Shown here one piece after another: positions 18,374 through 43,987 of a stretch of 64,000 nucleotides of DNA. Where the stretch lies: the NCBI GenBank assembly GCA_964304625.1, contig OZ199838.1, positions 13,211,843 through 13,275,842 on the forward strand, given 5' to 3'. Every line of letters begins with the position of its first letter. Position 1 is the stretch's first letter. The translations under genes were made by a program, and so were the position numbers. The notes beneath the pieces are model-generated. The model was given only the letters and a program-made list of their open reading frames with translations. It ran no database searches and had not been told where the DNA came from. This stretch comes from Kudoa neothunni. Lineage: Eukaryota; Animalia; Cnidaria.

Positions 18374-21300
18374 TTACTCTATTGGATTGGAATTATGGAA
18401 TTGTTTAATCAACTTAATCATTCCAATTATCTGGAAAGCTTGGGTATGTGAACATAATTCTTTCCCCAAAACAGCGTGCATACGGATGAGACTGGCTTCA
18501 AAATGAGATTTATCCTCGACGTCTAATGTTCCAACACTGATATTTCCAGATTCACATGCGGCTAAATTCAGACGAACATAGAATCATCAAAACACACCAA
18601 CATTTACCTATAACACTATTGGCAAACGTTAGCAGTGTACCCATTTGAGAGGTGGAACGAATAACGCTAAAAATGAATATATAAGCGTCGGAACACAAAC
18701 ATTGTGACTACTCGCAAATAAATTTGATCATTTGATTGAGTGTAGAGAGTGAACAATATCCTACGGCGTTATCCAATGAATTCTGTCTGATCAATTCTTG
18801 GATAACACTAACGATAATATGTTCTGGGTATTTCCCAGGCTAAATTTTCGAATACATCGTGAAAATTTGTTTTCATAGAAAAATAAAAACTTAATAACAG
18901 TATCGTTTCCTAATTAGAAAATTCTAGAATAAATTCCATCACAAAAATTACAATTTAGTAAATCATTCAATTTATCATCCCCACAAAATTACATCATAAA
19001 TTAAATTAATATATAATGCAATTAATAATTCCACGGTTAATCTTACATAATATTTAATGTTTTATCTCGAGAGGAGTTTTTTAACCAAAAATTTATGAGC
19101 TCTCTAACAAATACAGTATATGAACAGTTTTATAAAAATATCACTTATTTTATAAATATTAAATTAGAAAAATTATTATTATTAGTTAGATTTTTAGGAT
19201 ATTTTGAATTAAAATAAGATAAAAAATAACCAAAACACCAACCACGTGATTATCCTGTTTTACGCGATTATTTAGATGGATATTGTTTATTGATTGGTGC
19301 TTTTAATTCTCAATAGCTGGTCAAGTCTATTTAAAAATAATATTACTTAATAATATAAAATAAGAACAATATAACCCTCCATTGTGAGGGAGGAGGAAAA
19401 AATGCTATTATTCTGGAATCCCGCGTACCATACTTTAGCATACGTATTTTCACTTTTAAAAATAATTAGGAATTAAATGAGGAACTTGAATGTGAATCTT
19501 TTACATCGATACATGAAATTTAATTAACCGTAATACTGGTTTTCTAGACGAACATGCTTATAACCGAATTCGATAAAGCAATCCAAGTAAATAAAATGCT
19601 GCCCACATATTAAATGAGTGAAATAGCCACTAAAAAGTAATTTGTTCCTAGACATAAAAAGTAAAATTAAAAGCAAATAAATCTTTATGTAGAGACTGTT
19701 GCCGCTAATCTAATTATCACTTCTAACCGGAGAGCTCAAACAATTATGCACAAGATATTCTGCCGATTATATAGACAAAATTAATGCTTCAGCTTTATTA
19801 AATTTGAAGCGCGTAGTAATATTAAAATATTCAAAATCTTGAGTATTTACATAATAAATTACATATCAACAAATTAAAAAATATATTAAAAATTCTAAGA
19901 TTCAAAAGAGTGTCACAACATTTAAATATAAGAATGTGTATTTTGTTCTCAGGGTTTTTTTTTAATAAATTAACTTTTATCATTTACATTATATCCAGCT
20001 ATATTTAAAGGGCGATATTAAAAAATCATATACATAATGGCGCGTTAAAATGCGTAAAAATAGCCAAGTGACTTATTTTACGCATTTCTCCTCACCTACG
20101 AAGGTATTACGTCGAATTGGTCGCCTAACACAATTTTAATTTCACAACTATTTACTGATTTATAACGGAGCGGGAACTATAAATAATTAATCACTCCAGC
20201 CTCCAACGATTTTGAAATTAATAGGATCAAAATTTCCAATAAATATATTTACATTAAACAAAATAATTTAAAATTAAATTACTGAATATCACAAATAATT
20301 ATCAATACAACTGTAACTAAATTCATATCAAATAAAAATTAATCTCCCATAACCTGATTGTTTTTTGTTCGATGGGGGTTCGTCCACAATAACTATTTTA
20401 TATAAGGCATTGATTAAGGGCACATTTTTAATCCTTAATGAAAACTACACACGCGCAATATTCATTTTTAATCGCAGAAACTCCCATTTACAATTGATAC
20501 ATAACGTTGTTCTCTATAATATGCCGTAGTTAATTATGATTCGTCTCAATAGCCATTTAATTATATGAATAATACCTTAGAAAATTTGATAGCCGATGAT
20601 ACCATCGATAATAAATTATTTCAATTTTTTCCGAAATCGATTACATTTCGTTTCAATTCAAATGTTCAATACTAACAATATATTGATATGCCAGTGATAA
20701 CGAATTGATAGTTTAATCAAACGTAAGATATTACAAGGGATTACTTCATATATTTATTTTCAGATTACTCAAAACTGCCGTATTCAAAAAATGAATTTTT
20801 TTAAAAATCACCACAGCATAATGTGTTGTCATAGTAATCCTAATGTATTTAGATACAACAGACAACATTGATATTATTACAGGTGAAATGATTAAAATAA
20901 ATTAACAGTAATTTTTTAATAATTCATAACAGAAAAACAAATTAAATCTTCAGAAAATAGATACTGTATGTAATTAAGCAGAATTTTTACCGTAAAAATC
21001 TCTTCCAATGTGGCTTTATATTCGAATTTGCGTAGCAATTTTTCATATTTACCATATTTTATGTGTTTGGACTTTTTAGCAATCTAAATTTCACAAAAAT
21101 ATTCAAAGTCAACGATTGAATTAATCATTCGCTTATGAATTTGATATAAGGTGAATAAACTTCATTACTTGGACAGCTTTTCCCGCCTTAATTTGACTCG
21201 CAACAATTTTGGAAGTTGTAACATTTTCATTATTTGAAAGATTTCCGCTTAAAAACTTTTCATCGACATTCATCACATACAAATGTCCAGTAGCAGTTCC

Positions 21301-30487: not shown

Positions 30488-31216
30488 ATGTTGCTGACAC
30501 TTTTTAAACGGTAATCATAGTACATTAAACTTTCATGAGGTTGCTTAGAGGTATTTGCGATACGAAAAAGGTTTCTAGTGGAGCAATGCCGTTTGAATAC
30601 GATCCAACAAAAATTGTGTACGCTAATCGAAATCTCATGAGTTTAGAGGACATAGGCTACATGCGCCCGAGAGGTTATAATAAAAATGAAAAAACGATGC
30701 CAGTTTTTTAAAAGGTAGTTTCCGTGATTATTGTTCTTTTAATTTTTATAAGAGCTGAACTCAATATCTCAAATCGTCACATAAGAGCGCGAGTTTTTCA
30801 TCAACTTTCTCAAAAGGTTTTAGCTTCCGCATCCACACTGGAATTTGGCATAAGAAAATACCTTTCGAATAGTCTCACCAATATGGATGCTGTTATCCTT
30901 GTGGCTAATGTGTTGGCATATCGCTGCATGAAGGCTGGTGTAATGAATTGTTACTTTGAGATGCTCAACAAAGATGAAAACGAACGTTGGGCGGCATTTA
31001 AACGACAACTTAATGCTAATGGCATTGCTACTAGCGAGCCGGAGTTGGATCTACCATTAGAAATTTCAAAACCCTGTATTTGAAATGTTGGACTGGTTAA
31101 TTAATTTTTTCGGGATTTTAGACGAGAAAGAATACTATCACGTATATGGTGAATATGGTCCTATATCCTACTACAAAAATATGATTTATACAAAAAATCG
31201 TGTTCACTCGATTTAA
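30488..31216 (+). CDS. MRPL18: Mitochondrial ribosomal protein uL18m (frameshift in exon 2 as assembled)
   Basis: MLLTLFKRG presequence-like start, ANRNLMSLE..RPRGY, then KVLASASTLEFGIRKYL...VLAYRCMKAGV...GIATSEP, matching the MRPL18 family. One extra base near 30682-30694 puts TAA (30709) in frame. Confidence 0.85.
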
Positions 31217-31368: not shown

Positions 31369-31692
31369 TAATGTAGCCCAAAAGTCTCCATTGCCGAAAT
31401 TTCAGCGACAAGAAACAAAATGGGCGTCAATATATTGAGAGTTAAGACCACGCAATTTAATTAGTTGTAAATTGCGCTTTGAATAACTCTCAACGTTGTG
31501 AAGGCGTTGGAGAGGGAGTTTGGTTTAAGTTTACAACTACTCACTCTTGAGACAAACTCACCGAATAAAACAACCCAAGAGTTAGGTGCAAGGAGTAGTT
31601 TTAATATCCAAAATAATAGGTTAGGTTAGAGATGCACGGGTTAAAGAAATGAAGCATTCAGCTACATCGCCTCTTACCCGCCCAACGCCTCC
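31369..31692 (-). ncRNA. TERC: Candidate telomerase RNA (animal H/ACA type) with TTAGG template
   Basis: Manual fold. P1 31692-31682 pairs with 31510-31500 (11 bp). P1.1 31681-31636. Template CUAACCUAACCUA 31629-31617. P2a 31600-31593 with 31542-31535 (8 bp). P2b 31582-31574 with 31551-31543 (9 bp). U-rich loop UUUUAUUC, then P3 GAGUUUG (31559-31553) with CAAACUC (31522-31516). Long stem 31493-31435. 3' hairpin with UGAA loop followed by ACA (31374-31372). Confidence 0.8.
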
Positions 31693-31790
31693 GGTAACAC
31701 GTGCACGAAACTTTCTTATTCGTAGGGACCCTGACGGGTGATTTCCGATAATTCCCGGAAAATAATAATGTTAAGATTGGTCCAGCAACG
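31693..31790 (-). promoter_or_regulatory. Putative promoter of the telomerase RNA candidate
   Basis: Minus strand shows CCAAT (31780-31776) and a PSE-like TCACCCGTCA (31742-31733) about 50 nt upstream of P1. Motif resemblance only. Confidence 0.35.
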
Positions 31791-31971: not shown

Positions 31972-34474
31972 TTATTGTCTAGGAACTCCTATTGGGTAAC
32001 ATTCACCGTTATTGTTACAAACCTATAAGCACGATTACAATGTTTTTTACTACACCTATTAATTACTGATCCCATTGGACAGTTGGGGCATTTGGTGGCG
32101 AATTTTGAAATTGGTTGACAACTTGCTTGGAAGCAACCCTATCATATATAAACTTTAGTAGCTGTTACACATTTAATATACCATGGATTTTCCACAGGGG
32201 AAACCTTTTGGGGGAAGAGCTATATTGTCATCCTGTGTACTAAATGTAATAATATTTATTTGACGAATCGTGCTAGAATCTGGATAATTTTTAAATATAC
32301 TGGCAATTAATTGTTTCGCCATTGTTGACAAATGGTATGGTGATGGTTGGGAACTTACTGTTACCATTATGTTCACACCACAACCTCGAGCAAAGATCCC
32401 TATGTTTTTATTTAAATTATTAACAAAGCAACGATGCTAGTAGATAACAACGTTGAGGAGCAGACGACTTTCTCAGAAGCGTTAAGTGACGACGGCGAAG
32501 TATCATCACAATTGATATCGGAACTCATGTCTTTGATCATCTGAAGGCAGCGCTCCGAATACACAACATTCTTATCTAGCGTAATACAGATAATTGAGTA
32601 AAATCTATTAGTTAAAATCGACAAACCTGTTGGAAACATTCGTTTGCAAGCCATATTGGGATCTGAGCACATTCCATCGAAACAATGTGCCTACGATTAT
32701 GCAATTATTCAACAGTTGGATAGTCGAACAATACGTTTGCTCCACATTGTTTTCCGTCTGCTATGTAGACATCCTCACCACACTACATTTAAAATTTTTA
32801 AATTGCTATAGTCTGCTAACAACAATCAACTTCACTGTTTTCTCCATCACAATATTCTGGTATGTCACAAATAGGATCATTCATTTTTCGGCACAATTTC
32901 CCAGAGATAATCTATTTTATATAAAAAATTTGTTGTATATTGATTTGGAGTACCTGACAGTCTTGACAACAGACTTCATTTGAACACTGCACTCCAGGTT
33001 TGAGTTGACAAGTTTCTTGAGAACAACAAAATCCTGATTTGGCTTCTCGGCAAGTCTAAACATAATTTAACTAAATAGACATTTAAAATTTTAACGTATA
33101 ATATTAGAAGTTTATTAATTGGAAAAATTTTATGTTAAACTTGTGTCATGTATGACTTTAGATGAGTAAATCTAATGTATTGAATATACCTCCAAAGTTC
33201 CACAGTCGCAAGTTTCCCCATCGTGTTCGCTCTTGACACCGTTTCCACAAGTGTCAAATAGGTTTGTTTCCTAACTGAAAATAGATAGATTTGTTTATTT
33301 TCAATATACAAGAATTGGTTGTTGAAGACAACGCCAATTACGAGTTAGGAGTTCCTTGATAGAACAAGTGTGGAACGGTGGGGAATTTTTAGAATTATTC
33401 CTAAACATTTCATTATAAAGAAACAGTATTTTCTGTTATTTATAGAATTTGATATTTTTTTCAATTTACCATTTGAATTGTTCAGCTTTCATAACACATT
33501 TATTGTCAGCCACAGCACAATTACAATCAGGACGACTGCTATTCACTGGACTCATACCGAGCACCTGTCCGATCTCATGTGCTATGGTAAGTCCAACCTT
33601 TACATAATTCCATGTATTACAAACCTATAATTATAATTTGTCAAAAAATCGGTTTCCAATAAAAAAATATTAACTCTTATTAATCCAACAGCACTTTTTG
33701 CACAGGCGGTCCCGTAAAAGGATTTACCCCATTCATCTCCTTCTCCTTTTTTCTGGCTAGAATTAAAAACTAATCACTCACTTCAAAAATAAATAATTTG
33801 TGATAAATTATTTAATTAGAATATAATATCGTAATGTCTTTAATTATCGTAATATTGTTCAACAATGATAGAAATATTATATATTTTTGACTTATTCAAA
33901 CTCATTATTAAGGTATTTACATAAATAAAAGATTGACATCATGCATTATTCCGTCGTCACAAGAAACCTCACTAAATGCGTGTAACATATGGGTGTAATT
34001 ATGGGTGATTTCGATTTTGTCATCATCTTTCCAAATATCGAATTTGACCACCCTTAGTTCAATGTTATGCCAAGCGAATGACTAATTGTAGTTAATTCAC
34101 ACAATAAATAGTAAAATTTACTCTTTGAGCAAATTCAGTTGCATTTAATATAAACTCGACGAGTGTTTTTTCGTCAAGATCTAAACTTGTTATCTAAAAC
34201 AAATCGAATCTTTATCTATAAACAAAATTACTCACCATATCGTTAGATATGAAGTATTTCACATCGATGGAAAGTTTATTTGGTGATTTCACAATCAAGT
34301 GAGGATTGTAGGTTGGCTATTATTCAAAATAAAAGCTTCTTACTAATTTTATTTTACTTTTTTAATTTTTCCTAACGCAAATTAAAGCATTAATATTAGT
34401 CGATAAATAAAATCACCTGCAGACAGCACATTACATGATAAACAACATGCCAAAATAAACAAATTCCAAAACAT
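31972..34474 (-). CDS. ADAM/reprolysin-like protein: signal peptide, inactive metalloprotease fold, disintegrin, Cys-rich, truncated EGF; no prodomain or TM
   Basis: MFWNLFILACCLSCNVLSA signal, then IELRVVKFDIWKDDDKI and HEIGQVLGMSP...CVM. Disintegrin: CGNGVKSEHDGETCDCG, CCSQETCQLKPGVQCS, CRKMNDPICDIPEYCDG. Cys-rich: DLCSRLWC, GFPCGKSM. Ends VCNNNGECYPIGVPRQ*. Confidence 0.88.
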
Positions 34475-34835: not shown

Positions 34836-35421
34836 CTATAAAAATGGCAGCTTGTAAACATAAGTCATAATTTTCGAACCAATCCCATAGAATCCACATT
34901 TGAAATTCAACCTCCAGAATTCACTACAATATAATCAATTACACATAAATCATTCATCATATCCACATACATATTATAGTTAAAGTGTTTCGTTTTCTGT
35001 GATTTGAGAAATGATTTGTAGAACAGGTGGAAATCTACATCGGATGGTTTAATGTGGGGATAGCTTTTCATAAAATCACGTCTTTCCTAAAAATACATCA
35101 CCAAAATTTAGAATTAAATTAAATTTGCCACCTTTTCAAATTTCTCCCTATAACTCAACCAATAGTTGTTATTAAGTTGATACAACTCCTCAAAAAGCTC
35201 ATGGTAACGCGTTTCAATGGCACAACCATCACAACGACGATACATTTTAACCTTTCTGATGCCAGAAGGTGGTTCATCGTGTTCGACAAGATCGACTTTG
35301 TCATTTTTAATTGGTGAACTGTTGCCAAACAACATTGACTCAATATAAAAATGCTAATTTTTCAAACGTCGGCTAATCTCATCAGAAATCGGATTTATGA
35401 TAGCCCGACCCTTGAGATCAT
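34836..35421 (-). CDS. COA8: Cytochrome c oxidase assembly factor 8 (APOPT1); 5' end uncertain
   Basis: Spliced PPSGIRKV...LNNNYW...FEKERRDF...FYKSFLKSQKTKHFNYNIEFWRLNF aligns with the COA8 pattern PPDxxSNLR...WNxxFW...FxKEKEEF...FYKEFL...HxxYNxxWYxxN. Confidence 0.75.
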
Positions 35422-35589
35422 ACCTAGATTATTGGGGAAATTAAATTTAATTTTGCTCTACAAAACACATTTCATTCGGTAAAATGTTCCGTAAGTCCAT
35501 GTTGCTTTGAAAAATGCGCCCGTCGGATTTAAAAATTTAATCCTCTAATAAATTTGACGGCGGGCAACATATGAAAGGAGTGTCTTTGA

Positions 35590-36010
35590 ACTGAGCTGTA
35601 AATTTGGAGCTTAGAAGTTCGAATCTCTGGTCTGGTAAGACGCCGCGTCTGCTCTATGAGCCTCTTTTCATTAATTGGAATTTTAAATGGAGGTACGTTC
35701 ATTAATCTATGTTACATATCCTCAATTATAATCCGGTATGGTGAAGAGGGTCGGTTTAGACGTTGTATCGTCGGAGCCAAATTAGTTAACCAAAGTCCTC
35801 TATGTTTCACAGAGTGTGCCCACATCTTTTAAGTTGAGGAAAGATAGAGTTTTTAGCGATGATAACATGATTGAGATAGGGATGTGTAGAGAGTTAAATT
35901 CCCCCATTGCCGCAGGAGGATTGGGTGAGGCACTAAGTATTACTCAGAGTGTTATCTACAGAGTTCATAGATCCTGTCAGACCAACCAGAACTTACCAGT
36001 CTAATGGGCC
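35590..36010 (+). mobile_element. Possible non-LTR retroelement fragment
   Basis: GC-richer patch with B-box-like GTTCGAATC and a SPIAAGGLG peptide resembling the post-RT PxxxGGLG motif. Confidence 0.3.
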
Positions 36011-39118: not shown

Positions 39119-42100
39119 TTACACAGTATTAGTATTAGTGGAAATTATGCTCGAAGAATGCACACTAATTAGTTTTTTATAAGTTTTTATCGAATCGTTC
39201 AATCGATTGAGCAACACATTCATAGCAATTGCATCGTTGGGGTCGGAAGTGTGTTTGGCGAGAAAGTCCAGTCGAGATAGAGTCAATTCTGCAAGATAGA
39301 AATAGGAATTGACAGTGTGATCAGGGTGTTGAGCATAACTAGATGTAACGCTGTCAAGCAATGAGATACACCATTGAGCAGCTTTATCAAGCCTTAATTC
39401 GAGTAGATAAGTTTGAATAAGTTTGCCAATGTTGTTTCGGGCAATAAGTTGTTCAAGCCACTCTGGCACAACAACTTGTTTGGCCATGAAAACCCTGACG
39501 AGATTGCACAACAGCTGAACTTGTTTCTGGTCGGTGACACAGTCGTAGCAATATTTTTGAAGATTGGAAAAATCAGTATAAGAGGGTGATGTCACAACTG
39601 TAGCAATATTAGATGTATCGCTATCGGGATGATCTAAGGATATTTCATGTAGTGCGACGGCATTGATAACATATTGGAGTAGATCTATGCTGTTGTATGC
39701 GTATTTGAAGGCCACATTAAACATGTTATATTTGATTAGATATTTCACCATTTCAACTGGTTGCACAATTGGGAAAGTGCCGGGAAGAAACTGTAGCGTT
39801 TTAAGTTTTTTTTCAATAGCCAAACAAGTATCACAGAATATCACCATTTGTTCAATATCATCGAGGGTGATAATAGTTTTGGGTGTGAGATGGAATTCAT
39901 TGATCATAACTTGAATAGTGCGTTCTTCGTGTGAGACCGAAAGAGGAAGTTTAACGGCGTTATTTGGTTCCGACACAGATTCGTCACAATCATCGATAAT
40001 GCTAACATTTACTAGTTCGCTTAAAGTGTGTGCAAAATGAGTCAGGGCTTCGATGGTTTGTCTTTCAACATACCAATACTTCAACAGACATCCGTCGTAC
40101 AGCTTGTAATAGGCTGTAACGCAGAAAAATGCCGCCAACTCAAACAGCCGCATTGCAATACAGAATTCGGAGCACTGTTTGGCATAATTGATGATCGAGT
40201 CATGTGTAGATACATCCAGCACAGTCTGTTTGAGTACGCTTATAACCAATGGTAGGAATTCACCAAAATTAACGTCGACAAGTCGACATGCACCATCCGA
40301 GTCCATAATAGCATTACAAATTGTGGATATATTTTGAATGCGGATTTTAGTGTCACAATAGAAAAGACTGAGCAAATCTAGAGCCTCGCGGAAATTGTTC
40401 ATCTGAATGTAGCACATGAATTTCACATCAAGAAGTTTATTATATATGGGATTATCACTGAGGTAACAACTGTCATCACCATCACGAGAAACCCCCGTAA
40501 CATTGGGCATATTGATGTGGGTTGATTCCAGTCCATTGGACATTTTTAGGATGGGTGCGGACAATCCAACGGTCACCAAATCCAATAACAACCCAGGTTG
40601 GGGATGTTTTGAGTTGGTAAAGTCCGCAATCATGCAATCCAAAAAGTTGCCAAAAAATTCATCATCATATTTTGAGACATCATTCTTGAGTTGACTTTCA
40701 CTCACCAAATCGATGAATGCTCGAAGTAGTTCAACGTAGAAGATTTTGGCGTAAGAGTAATTATTCAACTTGACCAATGTACGTGCTATGTACAACTGTA
40801 ACTGAAGAATGTGAGCGTTGAACTTGGAGAATTCTTTGACAACTGTAGAGTCTGGGCCAGTCAGCATCAAGTTATTGCCTCCATCAATGCAACGGAGCTG
40901 AAACCACAGAGATATCATTGAAAAACAATGAAACAAGTTTTGTTCATAATGATAGCTGTTGTAGAGTCTTTCAGCAACTAAGGGTGTAAAAAATGAACCA
41001 ATTATTGTTTTTATTGTTCCGCCACCTAAGCGCACAACTACATCACTGTTATCAACAATTTTAGCATGAGTCGGAGTTGACGTTGCAGCGAACCACCAAC
41101 AATTAACACAACCAGCACAAACAATAGCCATTGATGTGCAGGAGGTGGCCCATTGTTTGACAACATGACAACCATCTAAAACTTCATTTAGAGGTTGCAT
41201 ATTAAAGCTGCTAAAGTCGTTTGTTGAGCAAAAATCGGAGTGTTTTCGCTGGACATAATTATCTTTGAAGTGACCAGCAGAGGACAATAATTGTTCACTA
41301 TTAGTTGTAGTGTTGCTGTTGTCATGTGCACACATCCAATCACTGCACAATTTAAGGCATTGTCCATAGAAGTTGAATAACACACGCACACGTTGAATTA
41401 TTGTTTGATATATAAAGGAGTTATTGCTGTTGTTGTTGTTGTTAGTGTTGGCGATGAGTGTGAGGTCGCAATCGATTTCCTTTTCCAACACATTGTAATA
41501 AACCATCAACAGCTGCGATGCAATAAGGAATTGATACCAACAGAAAAGGTTCAAGTGGGAGCTGAGAATTTGTGAGAGAATACAATAACCGAGCTGGTGT
41601 GTTTCCATATTGGTATCGGTTACCAAATCGATACTAAGCGACGAAAAGTTATTAACGTTGTTGGTCTGATCTGAATTATACTGATTATGCAGGTCGACAT
41701 CACCACCTTCACTATTCTTGAAAATATTGCTACTCTCAACAAACAACTGGATAAGAGAAAAAATATCTTCGATGTGTTCTTTATCGATGTTTACCATCGA
41801 AATATCATTATCTTTATCATCATTGTTCTTTTTGTTATTTGAGGATATTAATTGTCTGAGAAATTCGCAAACTCTTTCAAAGTGTTTGTCGTCTGAAGCT
41901 TTATTGTAATTAGTGTAGTTTTTGGTCATAAGTTCACGATCATTGATCATTCGATTGGTTTGGTTAGTGATGAGCTGTAGGTTTTTAAACACCACATACC
42001 TATCAGGAATATCCATAATTTTGCTAAAGTCAAAAATGACATTGGACGGGTGACGTCGAAGAGAATCTTTTTTGAGCAACTCGAAACTGTTCAACCAACC

Positions 42101-43987
42101 AAACACTCTCAGTCCACACAGATCATGGGTGTTTATGATGTAGCCGCCGAATTTAGGGTAGTAAAAGAGTTGGGTGGGGACAGAGAAAATTTGGGATGAG
42201 ATTTCATTGTTGGCCGTCAGAATGGTCATATAGATTCGTTGCCACACTTTAAGTGCAACCATATTTGGTGAGATTTTTTGTGGATTGTCAGCCAAACACG
42301 AACTACTTCCAAGCGAACGGGAAGCTTCAACCGAAAAACAGTTGATCTGACCAAATTTTGAAGCTATCTCATTTTCAACAATTTCCACCAACACACTCTT
42401 GATATTGGTGGTGGTTAGAAGTGTGGTTTGGTTGTGGGTGATAGCTGAGTTGATAGCACCGTAAGATTTGCCATATGTTTCCAAAGTGTTGACAATCGAT
42501 TGGAATAGAATCGAACTGTTGGAAAAGATTTTATATAGATAGTAGGAATGGATTTCATCCACCGAATTGAAAATTAAGGCTAACTTTGATATATCATCGC
42601 CATCTTGAAATAATGCATTCTCCAAAACATCAAACCCACTAACAAACACGATTTCGACTGTGGATGTTTTCTGTCGTGTGAAGAAGTATGAGCAGTAGTA
42701 ACAAACTTGATCGTTTTCAGTAGTTCCGACCAAAACAAGAGCGTACTCTTTACGCGTATCATTGATATCAGTTGTTGGTGGTTGCATAGTTGAGTCGTTT
42801 TTTGTTGGTACAACTAAGCAATCCATCACATAACAAACAGCATCTGCACAACAAAGAGGTGCATTCACAAACCAGCAGTTCTCATCACACGAGAATCCAT
42901 AAACATATAGAACGCCACAGTGATGTACAAACACTTGAATGTTGTTATCAAATTTGAAAACTTTCACAAACGAATTAGAATATTCCACCACAATATTGCT
43001 GTTGTTAATAGATGATGAAGCATTGAGAATAGATTGTGGTTGACCATTGTTGGATTGGCTAAGGTGTGCGGACAAAGTTTGCCTGTAGATTTCCTCACGA
43101 CCTTCACCGCTATAATCTTCCACAACCAAACTATTGTCCGAATATAACACCACGACCTTGCTATCATCCAATTGTTTTGCAGCTATCACACTAGGTTTTT
43201 TGCAGATTAGCGACATTATCGACGTGATACTCCTTTGAGCGAATCCTTGTGGTTCATACACATAAGGTAGTTCTGTTAGAATGATATCGTTGCTATGGTT
43301 TAGATGAATTCGGTAGAATGTCATTTTGCTTTTGATCACATTGAAAATAACCATCTGATAGGTGTCATCGATGTGATCCAATTTTCTCACATCAACTACC
43401 AGATCGCTACCAAATATAGGATCGGTATTTTGGTCTGGTAACTTAGCAACTTTTTTACCAGCATGAAAAAACAACCGATCGCCCTTAAAATTGAAACTGC
43501 TGCTATTGATAAGTGGACTTAGCAAGGATTTCTCGCCAAAATTCTTGTATGTAACAATGTTTAACCAACACTTGGTTCCAAATATCACAAACACATTTTC
43601 TTTTAATGTGTTAATGTGAAATAGATTCAAAAATTGGTTTGAAACGTTGGTTGAATAACTAAGAGCAAAGGTCACACTTGGAATGTGCTCAGTCAAAGTT
43701 TTGGTCAAATTATTTTCAAATATCATTAAACGATTGTCTTTCAGGATGTGATAATGAACCAATGTGTCCGATGAAATACCATTATCTCGGTTTCTCTCTA
43801 TCAACATCGATCCAGAACACTCCAATTTTCCACGAATTTCGTCATTGTGAAAAGAAAATCTGTGTTGAGCACGAAATATGTTGTTATCCAATGGATTGCA
43901 ATCAAATACAATAGTCTCGTGACTCAAATCATTATGTATATAGCCCAAATCATATATCGAACTTCTCACTTTGGGAGTGGTTGTCAT
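39119..43987 (-). CDS. NUP160: Nup160-like nucleoporin (1622 aa, intronless)
   Basis: Beta-rich N-terminal half and helical C-terminal half. The C-terminal VPEWLEQLIARNNIGKLIQTYLLELRLDKAAQWC resembles the Nup160 LPxWL...ELLRLYL...LEEA motif. Highly diverged, so the assignment is by recalled pattern. Confidence 0.65.
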   Translation of the reverse strand: MTTTPKVRSSIYDLGYIHNDLSHETIVFDCNPLDNNIFRAQHRFSFHNDEIRGKLECSGSMLIERNRDNGISSDTLVHYHILKDNRLMIFENNLTKTLTEHIPSVTFALSYSTNVSNQFLNLFHINTLKENVFVIFGTKCWLNIVTYKNFGEKSLLSPLINSSSFNFKGDRLFFHAGKKVAKLPDQNTDPIFGSDLVVDVRKLDHIDDTYQMVIFNVIKSKMTFYRIHLNHSNDIILTELPYVYEPQGFAQRSITSIMSLICKKPSVIAAKQLDDSKVVVLYSDNSLVVEDYSGEGREEIYRQTLSAHLSQSNNGQPQSILNASSSINNSNIVVEYSNSFVKVFKFDNNIQVFVHHCGVLYVYGFSCDENCWFVNAPLCCADAVCYVMDCLVVPTKNDSTMQPPTTDINDTRKEYALVLVGTTENDQVCYYCSYFFTRQKTSTVEIVFVSGFDVLENALFQDGDDISKLALIFNSVDEIHSYYLYKIFSNSSILFQSIVNTLETYGKSYGAINSAITHNQTTLLTTTNIKSVLVEIVENEIASKFGQINCFSVEASRSLGSSSCLADNPQKISPNMVALKVWQRIYMTILTANNEISSQIFSVPTQLFYYPKFGGYIINTHDLCGLRVFGWLNSFELLKKDSLRRHPSNVIFDFSKIMDIPDRYVVFKNLQLITNQTNRMINDRELMTKNYTNYNKASDDKHFERVCEFLRQLISSNNKKNNDDKDNDISMVNIDKEHIEDIFSLIQLFVESSNIFKNSEGGDVDLHNQYNSDQTNNVNNFSSLSIDLVTDTNMETHQLGYCILSQILSSHLNLFCWYQFLIASQLLMVYYNVLEKEIDCDLTLIANTNNNNNSNNSFIYQTIIQRVRVLFNFYGQCLKLCSDWMCAHDNSNTTTNSEQLLSSAGHFKDNYVQRKHSDFCSTNDFSSFNMQPLNEVLDGCHVVKQWATSCTSMAIVCAGCVNCWWFAATSTPTHAKIVDNSDVVVRLGGGTIKTIIGSFFTPLVAERLYNSYHYEQNLFHCFSMISLWFQLRCIDGGNNLMLTGPDSTVVKEFSKFNAHILQLQLYIARTLVKLNNYSYAKIFYVELLRAFIDLVSESQLKNDVSKYDDEFFGNFLDCMIADFTNSKHPQPGLLLDLVTVGLSAPILKMSNGLESTHINMPNVTGVSRDGDDSCYLSDNPIYNKLLDVKFMCYIQMNNFREALDLLSLFYCDTKIRIQNISTICNAIMDSDGACRLVDVNFGEFLPLVISVLKQTVLDVSTHDSIINYAKQCSEFCIAMRLFELAAFFCVTAYYKLYDGCLLKYWYVERQTIEALTHFAHTLSELVNVSIIDDCDESVSEPNNAVKLPLSVSHEERTIQVMINEFHLTPKTIITLDDIEQMVIFCDTCLAIEKKLKTLQFLPGTFPIVQPVEMVKYLIKYNMFNVAFKYAYNSIDLLQYVINAVALHEISLDHPDSDTSNIATVVTSPSYTDFSNLQKYCYDCVTDQKQVQLLCNLVRVFMAKQVVVPEWLEQLIARNNIGKLIQTYLLELRLDKAAQWCISLLDSVTSSYAQHPDHTVNSYFYLAELTLSRLDFLAKHTSDPNDAIAMNVLLNRLNDSIKTYKKLISVHSSSIISTNTNTV

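Follow-up and report, generated by a model that had tools for sequence, protein, structure and literature searches.

A candidate telomerase RNA in the myxozoan Kudoa neothunni, with a 5-nt template period in a genome whose telomere repeat is 6 nt

We report a minus-strand RNA gene in Kudoa neothunni, a parasite of fish, that is very probably a telomerase RNA (TR) and, judged by sequence comparison and predicted structure, would be the first from a myxozoan; the literature searched on telomerase RNA and Myxozoa yielded no described myxozoan TR. The assignment draws on (i) a homologue in a distant relative that shows compensatory changes; (ii) a single genomic copy; (iii) the metazoan combination of a template-pseudoknot core with an H/ACA domain; and (iv) the presence of TERT and dyskerin genes in the genome. 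In function the RNA probably resembles a metazoan H/ACA telomerase RNA of the P1.1 type: by inference from known TRs, TERT would bind its core, its 5' H/ACA hairpin would act as an eCR4/5, and dyskerin would cap its 3' end, 3 nt past the ACA box. A preliminary description of this DNA had proposed telomerase RNA identity, which comparison and architecture support well, but the template predicts TTAGG and the telomere reads TTTAGG.

Genomic context, copy number and folding

The assembly comprises 40.26 Mb in three chromosomes together with an 18.2-kb, highly divergent mitochondrial contig; the genome has been described as 40.2 Mb in three chromosomes, with (TAAACC)n kept at one chromosome 2 end (PMC12239612). 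It encodes dyskerin and a TERT with TEN, TRBD and RT motifs (C2, about 7,021,500-7,024,500). The single U2 snRNA match (G000:C2:7003100-7003284) lies ~18 kb from the TERT gene. The candidate RNA and its neighbours, for which exons were used singly as search queries, are located in a stretch of 64,000 nt (the window, to which positions without a prefix refer) and in a contig from a relative, L037, as follows:

30535-31216, plus strand: MRPL18, three inferred exons, convergent; exon 2 matches PF00861 (E 2e-7)
31369-31692, minus strand: candidate telomerase RNA, 324 nt, from the start of P1 to 3 nt past ACA
31990-33624, minus strand: part of an ADAM-like gene, upstream of the RNA; exon translations read by eye
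35114-35335, minus strand (L037:4893-5345, minus strand): COA8
L037:4859-4569, minus strand: homologous RNA, 291 nt, between MRPL18 and COA8

The figure of 324 nt takes the start of P1 as a provisional 5' end. Over this length the RNA has a minimum free energy (MFE) of -107 kcal/mol (z -7.68), which none of 100 shuffles equalled; all 256 sampled 324-nt windows were less stable (best -94.5), and the plus strand of the locus folds more weakly, at -84.7. Two further stretches, 18501-18824 and 35501-35824, also fold strongly (-94.5 and -89.3 kcal/mol) and are perhaps inverted-repeat elements. The dispersed copies that would suggest a transposable element were not found: genome BLAST returned one copy, on which ground a transposon or repeat origin was rejected. 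A protein-coding reading was likewise rejected, there being no ORF of at least 60 aa across 31369-31692. A pseudoknot covariance model without the template gave the candidate locus as its sole match among the 150 of 869 candidates scored.

A distance of 152 nt separates the MRPL18 stop from the 3' end of the RNA, and the last MRPL18 exon is conserved in L037. The ADAM-like exons encode a metalloprotease motif with a His replaced, a disintegrin and a Cys-rich region; in the zinc motif, HEIGQVLGM (33469-33624, minus strand), it is the second His that is replaced, so that the protein, judged by this motif, is probably catalytically inactive. In L037 there is no ADAM-like gene between COA8 and the TR; the COA8 stop lies ~35 nt ahead of P1, and no more than ~20 nt separate the end of the MRPL18 frame from the 3' end of the TR, which thus occupies nearly the whole intergenic space. 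We found no promoter of the snRNA type, as neither TR is preceded by the motif that precedes U2. Given this absence and the nearness of the COA8 stop to P1, an own promoter and an upstream 3' UTR are both possible routes to the RNA. Directly 5' of P1, both species have a short GC-rich palindrome (31693-31710, minus strand, CACGTG; L037:4860-4878, minus strand, TGCGCGCA), possibly a promoter element or leader. Elsewhere in the window, at 39119-43987 on the minus strand, one ORF of 1622 aa has no Pfam match.

A homologous RNA with compensatory changes

L037, a Logan contig from run SRR31175926 with 23% GC, was reached through MRPL18 exon 2, used as the query of a profile search, and its MRPL18 (P0001) is that of a distant relative, 62% identical to the K. 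neothunni protein. Protein searches, metagenome scans and contig look-up gave no homologues beyond this one. Alignment of the MRPL18 interval, the comparison envisaged in the preliminary description, revealed an RNA that retains the template along with the pseudoknot and an H/ACA end of two hairpins, and that independently folds alike (z = -4.97). The two RNAs are 76% identical across P2-P3, compared with 45% for the upstream flank as aligned. The elements of the K. neothunni RNA, each found at the minus-strand position first proposed for it, are these:

31682-31692, minus strand: P1 5' strand, pairing with 31500-31510
31636-31681, minus strand: P1.1, template-adjacent hairpin, putative template boundary element
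31617-31629, minus strand: template tract, CUAACCUAACCUA
31600-31593/31542-31535, minus strand: P2a, followed by a 10-nt bulge
31581-31574/31551-31544, minus strand: P2b, within the block 31535-31600
31573-31563, minus strand: U-rich J2b/3, invariant in L037
31562-31553, minus strand: P3 5' strand, partner of 31522-31513
31513-31534, minus strand: A-rich J2a/3 linker and P3 3' strand, with the P3 core at 31522-31517
31500-31510, minus strand: P1 3' strand, partner of 31682-31692
31435-31493, minus strand: 5' hairpin of the H/ACA domain (hairpin 1), an unbranched stem-loop-stem and candidate eCR4/5
31428-31433, minus strand: H-box position
31376-31425, minus strand: 3' H/ACA hairpin with pocket
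31369-31374, minus strand: ACA box and 3 nt

In this comparison of two sequences, for which the alignment of P1.1, outer P3 and hairpin 1 was registered by hand, 38 of the 49 pairs formed in K. neothunni are unchanged in L037, 7 are compensatory, 1 has a one-sided change and 3 are broken, all of the last at the P1.1 end or in outer P3. Nearly all stem substitutions (20 of 21) fall on both sides of one pair, an outcome that 0 of 200,000 random placements matched. On the unedited alignment, slid controls gave no double changes and P2a and P2b together have 3. A column-shuffle control on P2 was not significant with two sequences (59/500), the pair count on the raw alignment, in which AT-rich parts are misaligned, gave p 0.056, and, with double changes considered by themselves, the share that retained pairing was not significant (7/10, p 0.10). 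RNAalifold recovered P1, P2a, P2b and the base of the 3' hairpin unaided.

The core domain

P1 had been described as an 11-bp helix enclosing a core, and 31692-31682 indeed pairs with 31510-31500, 171 nt apart, over 11 bp; its 8-bp core has no broken pair in L037 and includes 2 compensatory ones. The next hairpin, P1.1, stops 6 nt ahead of the tract at 31629-31617, also as described. It is the MFE structure in both species, its CCG base is spaced 7 nt from the template in both, and in L037 it shows 1 compensatory pair and a terminal G-U replaced by A-A. P2 consists of P2a (8 bp), the 10-nt bulge on the 5' side and P2b (9 bp), in agreement with the earlier reading, and 16 of 16 pairs across P2a and P2b are kept in L037, with 3 compensatory changes and 1 one-sided change. 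The proposed P3 pseudoknot likewise forms, with a 6-bp core (AGUUUG/CAAACU) that is invariant and outer pairs that are not conserved in L037. Since the P3 core and the U-rich loop are both invariant, P3 is without covariation support; the UUUU loop and UUU:AAA pairs would suit U-A.U triples.

The H/ACA domain and the absence of P6.1

The H/ACA layout (hairpin, H position, hairpin, ACA position, 3 nt) has two hairpins in both species. Hairpin 1 corresponds to the 59-nt stem noted previously, at 31493-31435. Its base, UUGAG/CUCAA, is conserved, its upper stem differs in sequence yet forms in both species, and the 3' side of its loop has 5-6 nt in both. Being unbranched, it has no P6.1, and a CR4/5 three-way junction with P6.1 is absent from both the K. 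neothunni RNA and the L037 homologue. On the 5' side of hairpin 1, a small UUGA...UCAA hairpin with GUU in its loop is possible in both species (31479-31493, minus strand; L037:4659-4672, minus strand); it is mutually exclusive with the base of hairpin 1 and might replace P6.1, though on the wrong side.

The caveat that the RNA has no exact ANANNA H box holds for K. neothunni, which reads AUAUUG (ANANNG), while L037 has the canonical AUAUUA, an exact ANANNA. The second hairpin and its ACA are in place (31425-31376 and 31374-31372); the base stem has 1 compensatory pair, and L037 reads AUA followed by the identical 3 nt. What did not stand was the CAB-like loop: UGAG is not present in K. neothunni, where the terminal loop (31405-31397) has UGAA, nor is there such a motif in L037, and as the loop is not conserved we assign no CAB box. 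Teleost TRs likewise have none (PMC8480181).

The lack of P6.1, together with the disagreement between template and telomere considered below, could mean that this is some other conserved non-coding RNA, of the H/ACA type or not, and no telomerase RNA at all, its tract being coincidental. Rfam searches are in line with such a reading, as models including Telomerase-vert gave chance-level matches only to the K. neothunni RNA and the L037 homologue, none above the gathering threshold. We nevertheless regard it as very unlikely, because the single-stranded CUAAC tract is conserved at a fixed distance from P1.1, inside P1; because the succession of tract, triple-helix-type pseudoknot and H/ACA end is an order specific to metazoan TRs (PMC8480181); and because TERT is intact yet no alternative TR candidate was found.

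Template versus telomere repeat

The template tract has a 5-nt period, would give TTAGG if copied literally and is conserved in L037, the period spanning 13 nt in K. neothunni and 16 nt there. None of 3000 shuffles produced a match of at least 13 nt to (CCUAA)n, and the tract holds 2.6 copies of the TTAGG complement; metazoan TR templates usually hold 1.5-2 copies of the telomere repeat of their own species. The match to the real repeat, TTTAGG, is only 7 nt long (AACCUAA, 31627-31621), a length reached by 9% of shuffles. These 7 nt amount to a single permutation of TTTAGG with 1 nt more, short of the usual 1.5 copies but as much as the minimal template rule asks for (PMC9841428). The tract had been called telomere-complementary; it is complementary to TTAGG repeats, but not to the TTTAGG of this genome. 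Chromosome ends that disagree with the template had been named as an argument against telomerase RNA identity, and such a disagreement was found in part, a 5-nt TTAGG period standing against a TTTAGG telomere.

The sole assembled telomere array, at the end of chromosome 2, consists of 89.5 perfect TTTAGG copies (537 bp), and no TTAGG array occurs anywhere in the assembly. An arthropod origin of the DNA, which a TTAGG template would suggest, was rejected on account of this absence. Kudoa transposon families lead directly into the TTTAGG array, without a gap in the last 9.7 kb of the chromosome. The subtelomere (L068, the last 10 kb) contains remnants of a PIF1-like helicase and a piggyBac-like transposase and a CATCTTCAT microsatellite, and it stops abruptly at the array, with no degenerate repeats. 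The telomere motif has been reported from 2 scaffolds, from an alternate contig and from 49 reads, and a second Kudoa species also has it in its reads (PMC12239612). As host transposons run up to the array, and in view of this report, we consider the TTTAGG telomere native. The source is a fish meta-assembly with low coverage, and the array might accordingly come from a cobiont or from an assembly error, the true Kudoa ends being TTAGG; with HiFi data, a gapless junction to Kudoa transposons, and the motif present on more than one contig as well as in reads for another parasite species in another host, this is highly improbable.

Search for a second telomerase RNA

The RNA described here might make TTAGG, or be secondary, while a paralogue with a CUAAAC-type template, either missing from the assembly or too diverged, makes TTTAGG. 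Mimulus and Tribolium have TR paralogues whose templates differ (PMC12169523, PMC13023368), the assembly coverage is ~7x, and the genome-wide model search scored just 150 of 869 candidates. However, no second match was obtained by BLAST (E<=1) or, among the candidates scored, by the pseudoknot covariance model (E<=10); 3 of the 5 internal CTAAACCTAAAC sites in the genome and one 11-nt site are without TR-like context; and mixed repeats would be expected from two active TRs, yet the array is pure. A paralogue is therefore, in our view, an unlikely source of the repeat.

The three internal sites (L039-L041) were accordingly rejected as TR templates, as was the 11-nt TTTAGG-type match in L074, which sits in a dispersed repeat (L074:1698-2100; at least 40 copies, 82-90% identity). 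Also rejected was a GC-rich structured RNA of ~345 nt without an Rfam match (L069:1323-1672, minus strand; G000:C1, about 3,436,320-3,436,670), which has no run of at least 8 nt matching any of three telomere repeats and no model match. The 5' end of this RNA recalls RNase P RNA. It has a TATA-like box and an upstream motif, TGACGTCATTTTA, in common with U2 at a similar distance; genome-wide there are 6 occurrences of this motif and 3 of a control.

If instead the only TR copies its template faithfully into TTAGG, the TTTAGG arrays would have to be kept by recombination, with telomerase adding TTAGG only at the tips, rarely, or in another life stage. This would be the simplest biochemistry for a 5-nt template, only one chromosome end (537 bp) is assembled, and myxozoan ends can be atypical, such as [CYAACY]n in Sphaerospora molnari. 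It is at odds with an assembly devoid of any TTAGG array, with an array that reads TTTAGG up to its final base, and with the age of the template, which should by now have replaced a TTTAGG array. Moreover, telomere arrays maintained by recombination usually degenerate. Taken together, we judge this explanation to be quite unlikely.

A proposed T-slip on the template

The reading we prefer, with chances that we put at about even, is that a single Kudoa TR builds TTTAGG by one T-slip per repeat on the template AA. An enumeration of boundaries and steps yielded TTTAGG only from cycles that gain one T on this AA. In the preferred form, the template boundary would be the usual 5' C (31629), and a TTAG end would re-anneal to the second CUAA by 4 perfect pairs; after addition of G-T-T the primer would slip back one base, looping out a T, whereupon a third T and then A-G would be added. 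In an equivalent form, with the boundary at A 31627, every cycle would copy AACCUA and advance by 6 nt, again by way of the bulged-T intermediate. A pairing of 4 bp is enough for TERT, whose cavity accepts a looped-out primer; loop-outs one pair from the 3' end are ~50-fold worse than those two pairs away (PMC8740718), which weighs against the slip.

Two further observations count against the slip: pairing is better in the unbulged 5-nt register (6 bp, versus 5 bp and a bulge), which would yield TTAGG, and a 5-nt period kept without fault for 13-16 nt in both of these distant species fits a TTAGG product. Furthermore, 89.5 flawless copies mean that the slip would have to be near-deterministic, and we found no published precedent for a slip of that kind. 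Unfaithful copying as such occurs in Paramecium (T misincorporation), plants (T-slippage) and fission yeast (G stutter), giving mixed repeats. As proposed for Kudoa, the repeats of these telomerases differ from the literal template by a T or G slip; unlike theirs, the Kudoa array is uniform and would require a slip in every cycle. Only tentatively, and with slightly less than even confidence, do we extend the T-slip reading to one in which a minimal TR with an independent loss of P6.1 makes uniform 6-nt repeats by one programmed T-slip per cycle, so that the register of the enzyme, and not the template alone, sets the repeat.

Comparison with known telomerase RNAs

The RNA has in common with basal metazoan TRs (cnidarian, placozoan and sponge; Logeswaran et al. 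2021, PMC8480181) the P1-enclosed template-pseudoknot core, P1.1 and the H/ACA 3' domain. It differs from them in its size (291-324 nt), its 5-nt template period, the absence of a conserved P2.1 that we could see and the lack of CR4/5-P6.1, whereas a canonical CR4/5 with P6.1 is present in all basal metazoan TRs, including those of 26 cnidarians (PMC8480181). P1.1, an H/ACA end and a simple stem in place of CR4/5 are also found in the eCR4/5 TRs of protostomes and echinoderms (apple snail, sea urchin), but these have P4/P5/P6 where Kudoa has one unbranched hairpin, and their templates match TTAGGG; the loss of P6.1 in Kudoa would be independent of theirs. With insect TTAGG TRs (Lepidoptera, Coleoptera, Hymenoptera; PMC11892584, PMC13023368, PMC9841428) it shares the CUAAC 5-nt period, P1.1 and a pseudoknot; in contrast to these, it keeps an H/ACA domain, is without the U2-upstream motif and belongs to a genome with TTTAGG telomeres.

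A myxozoan TR would fill a gap in animal TR evolution, would be among the smallest H/ACA-type TRs, and would represent a probable third loss of the CR4/5 P6.1. TR discovery assumes that the template matches the telomere (PMC9841428). If the T-slip is true, a uniform repeat one base above the template period would break this assumption, and Kudoa would provide a naturally occurring case on which models of primer loop-out and translocation by telomerase could be tested.
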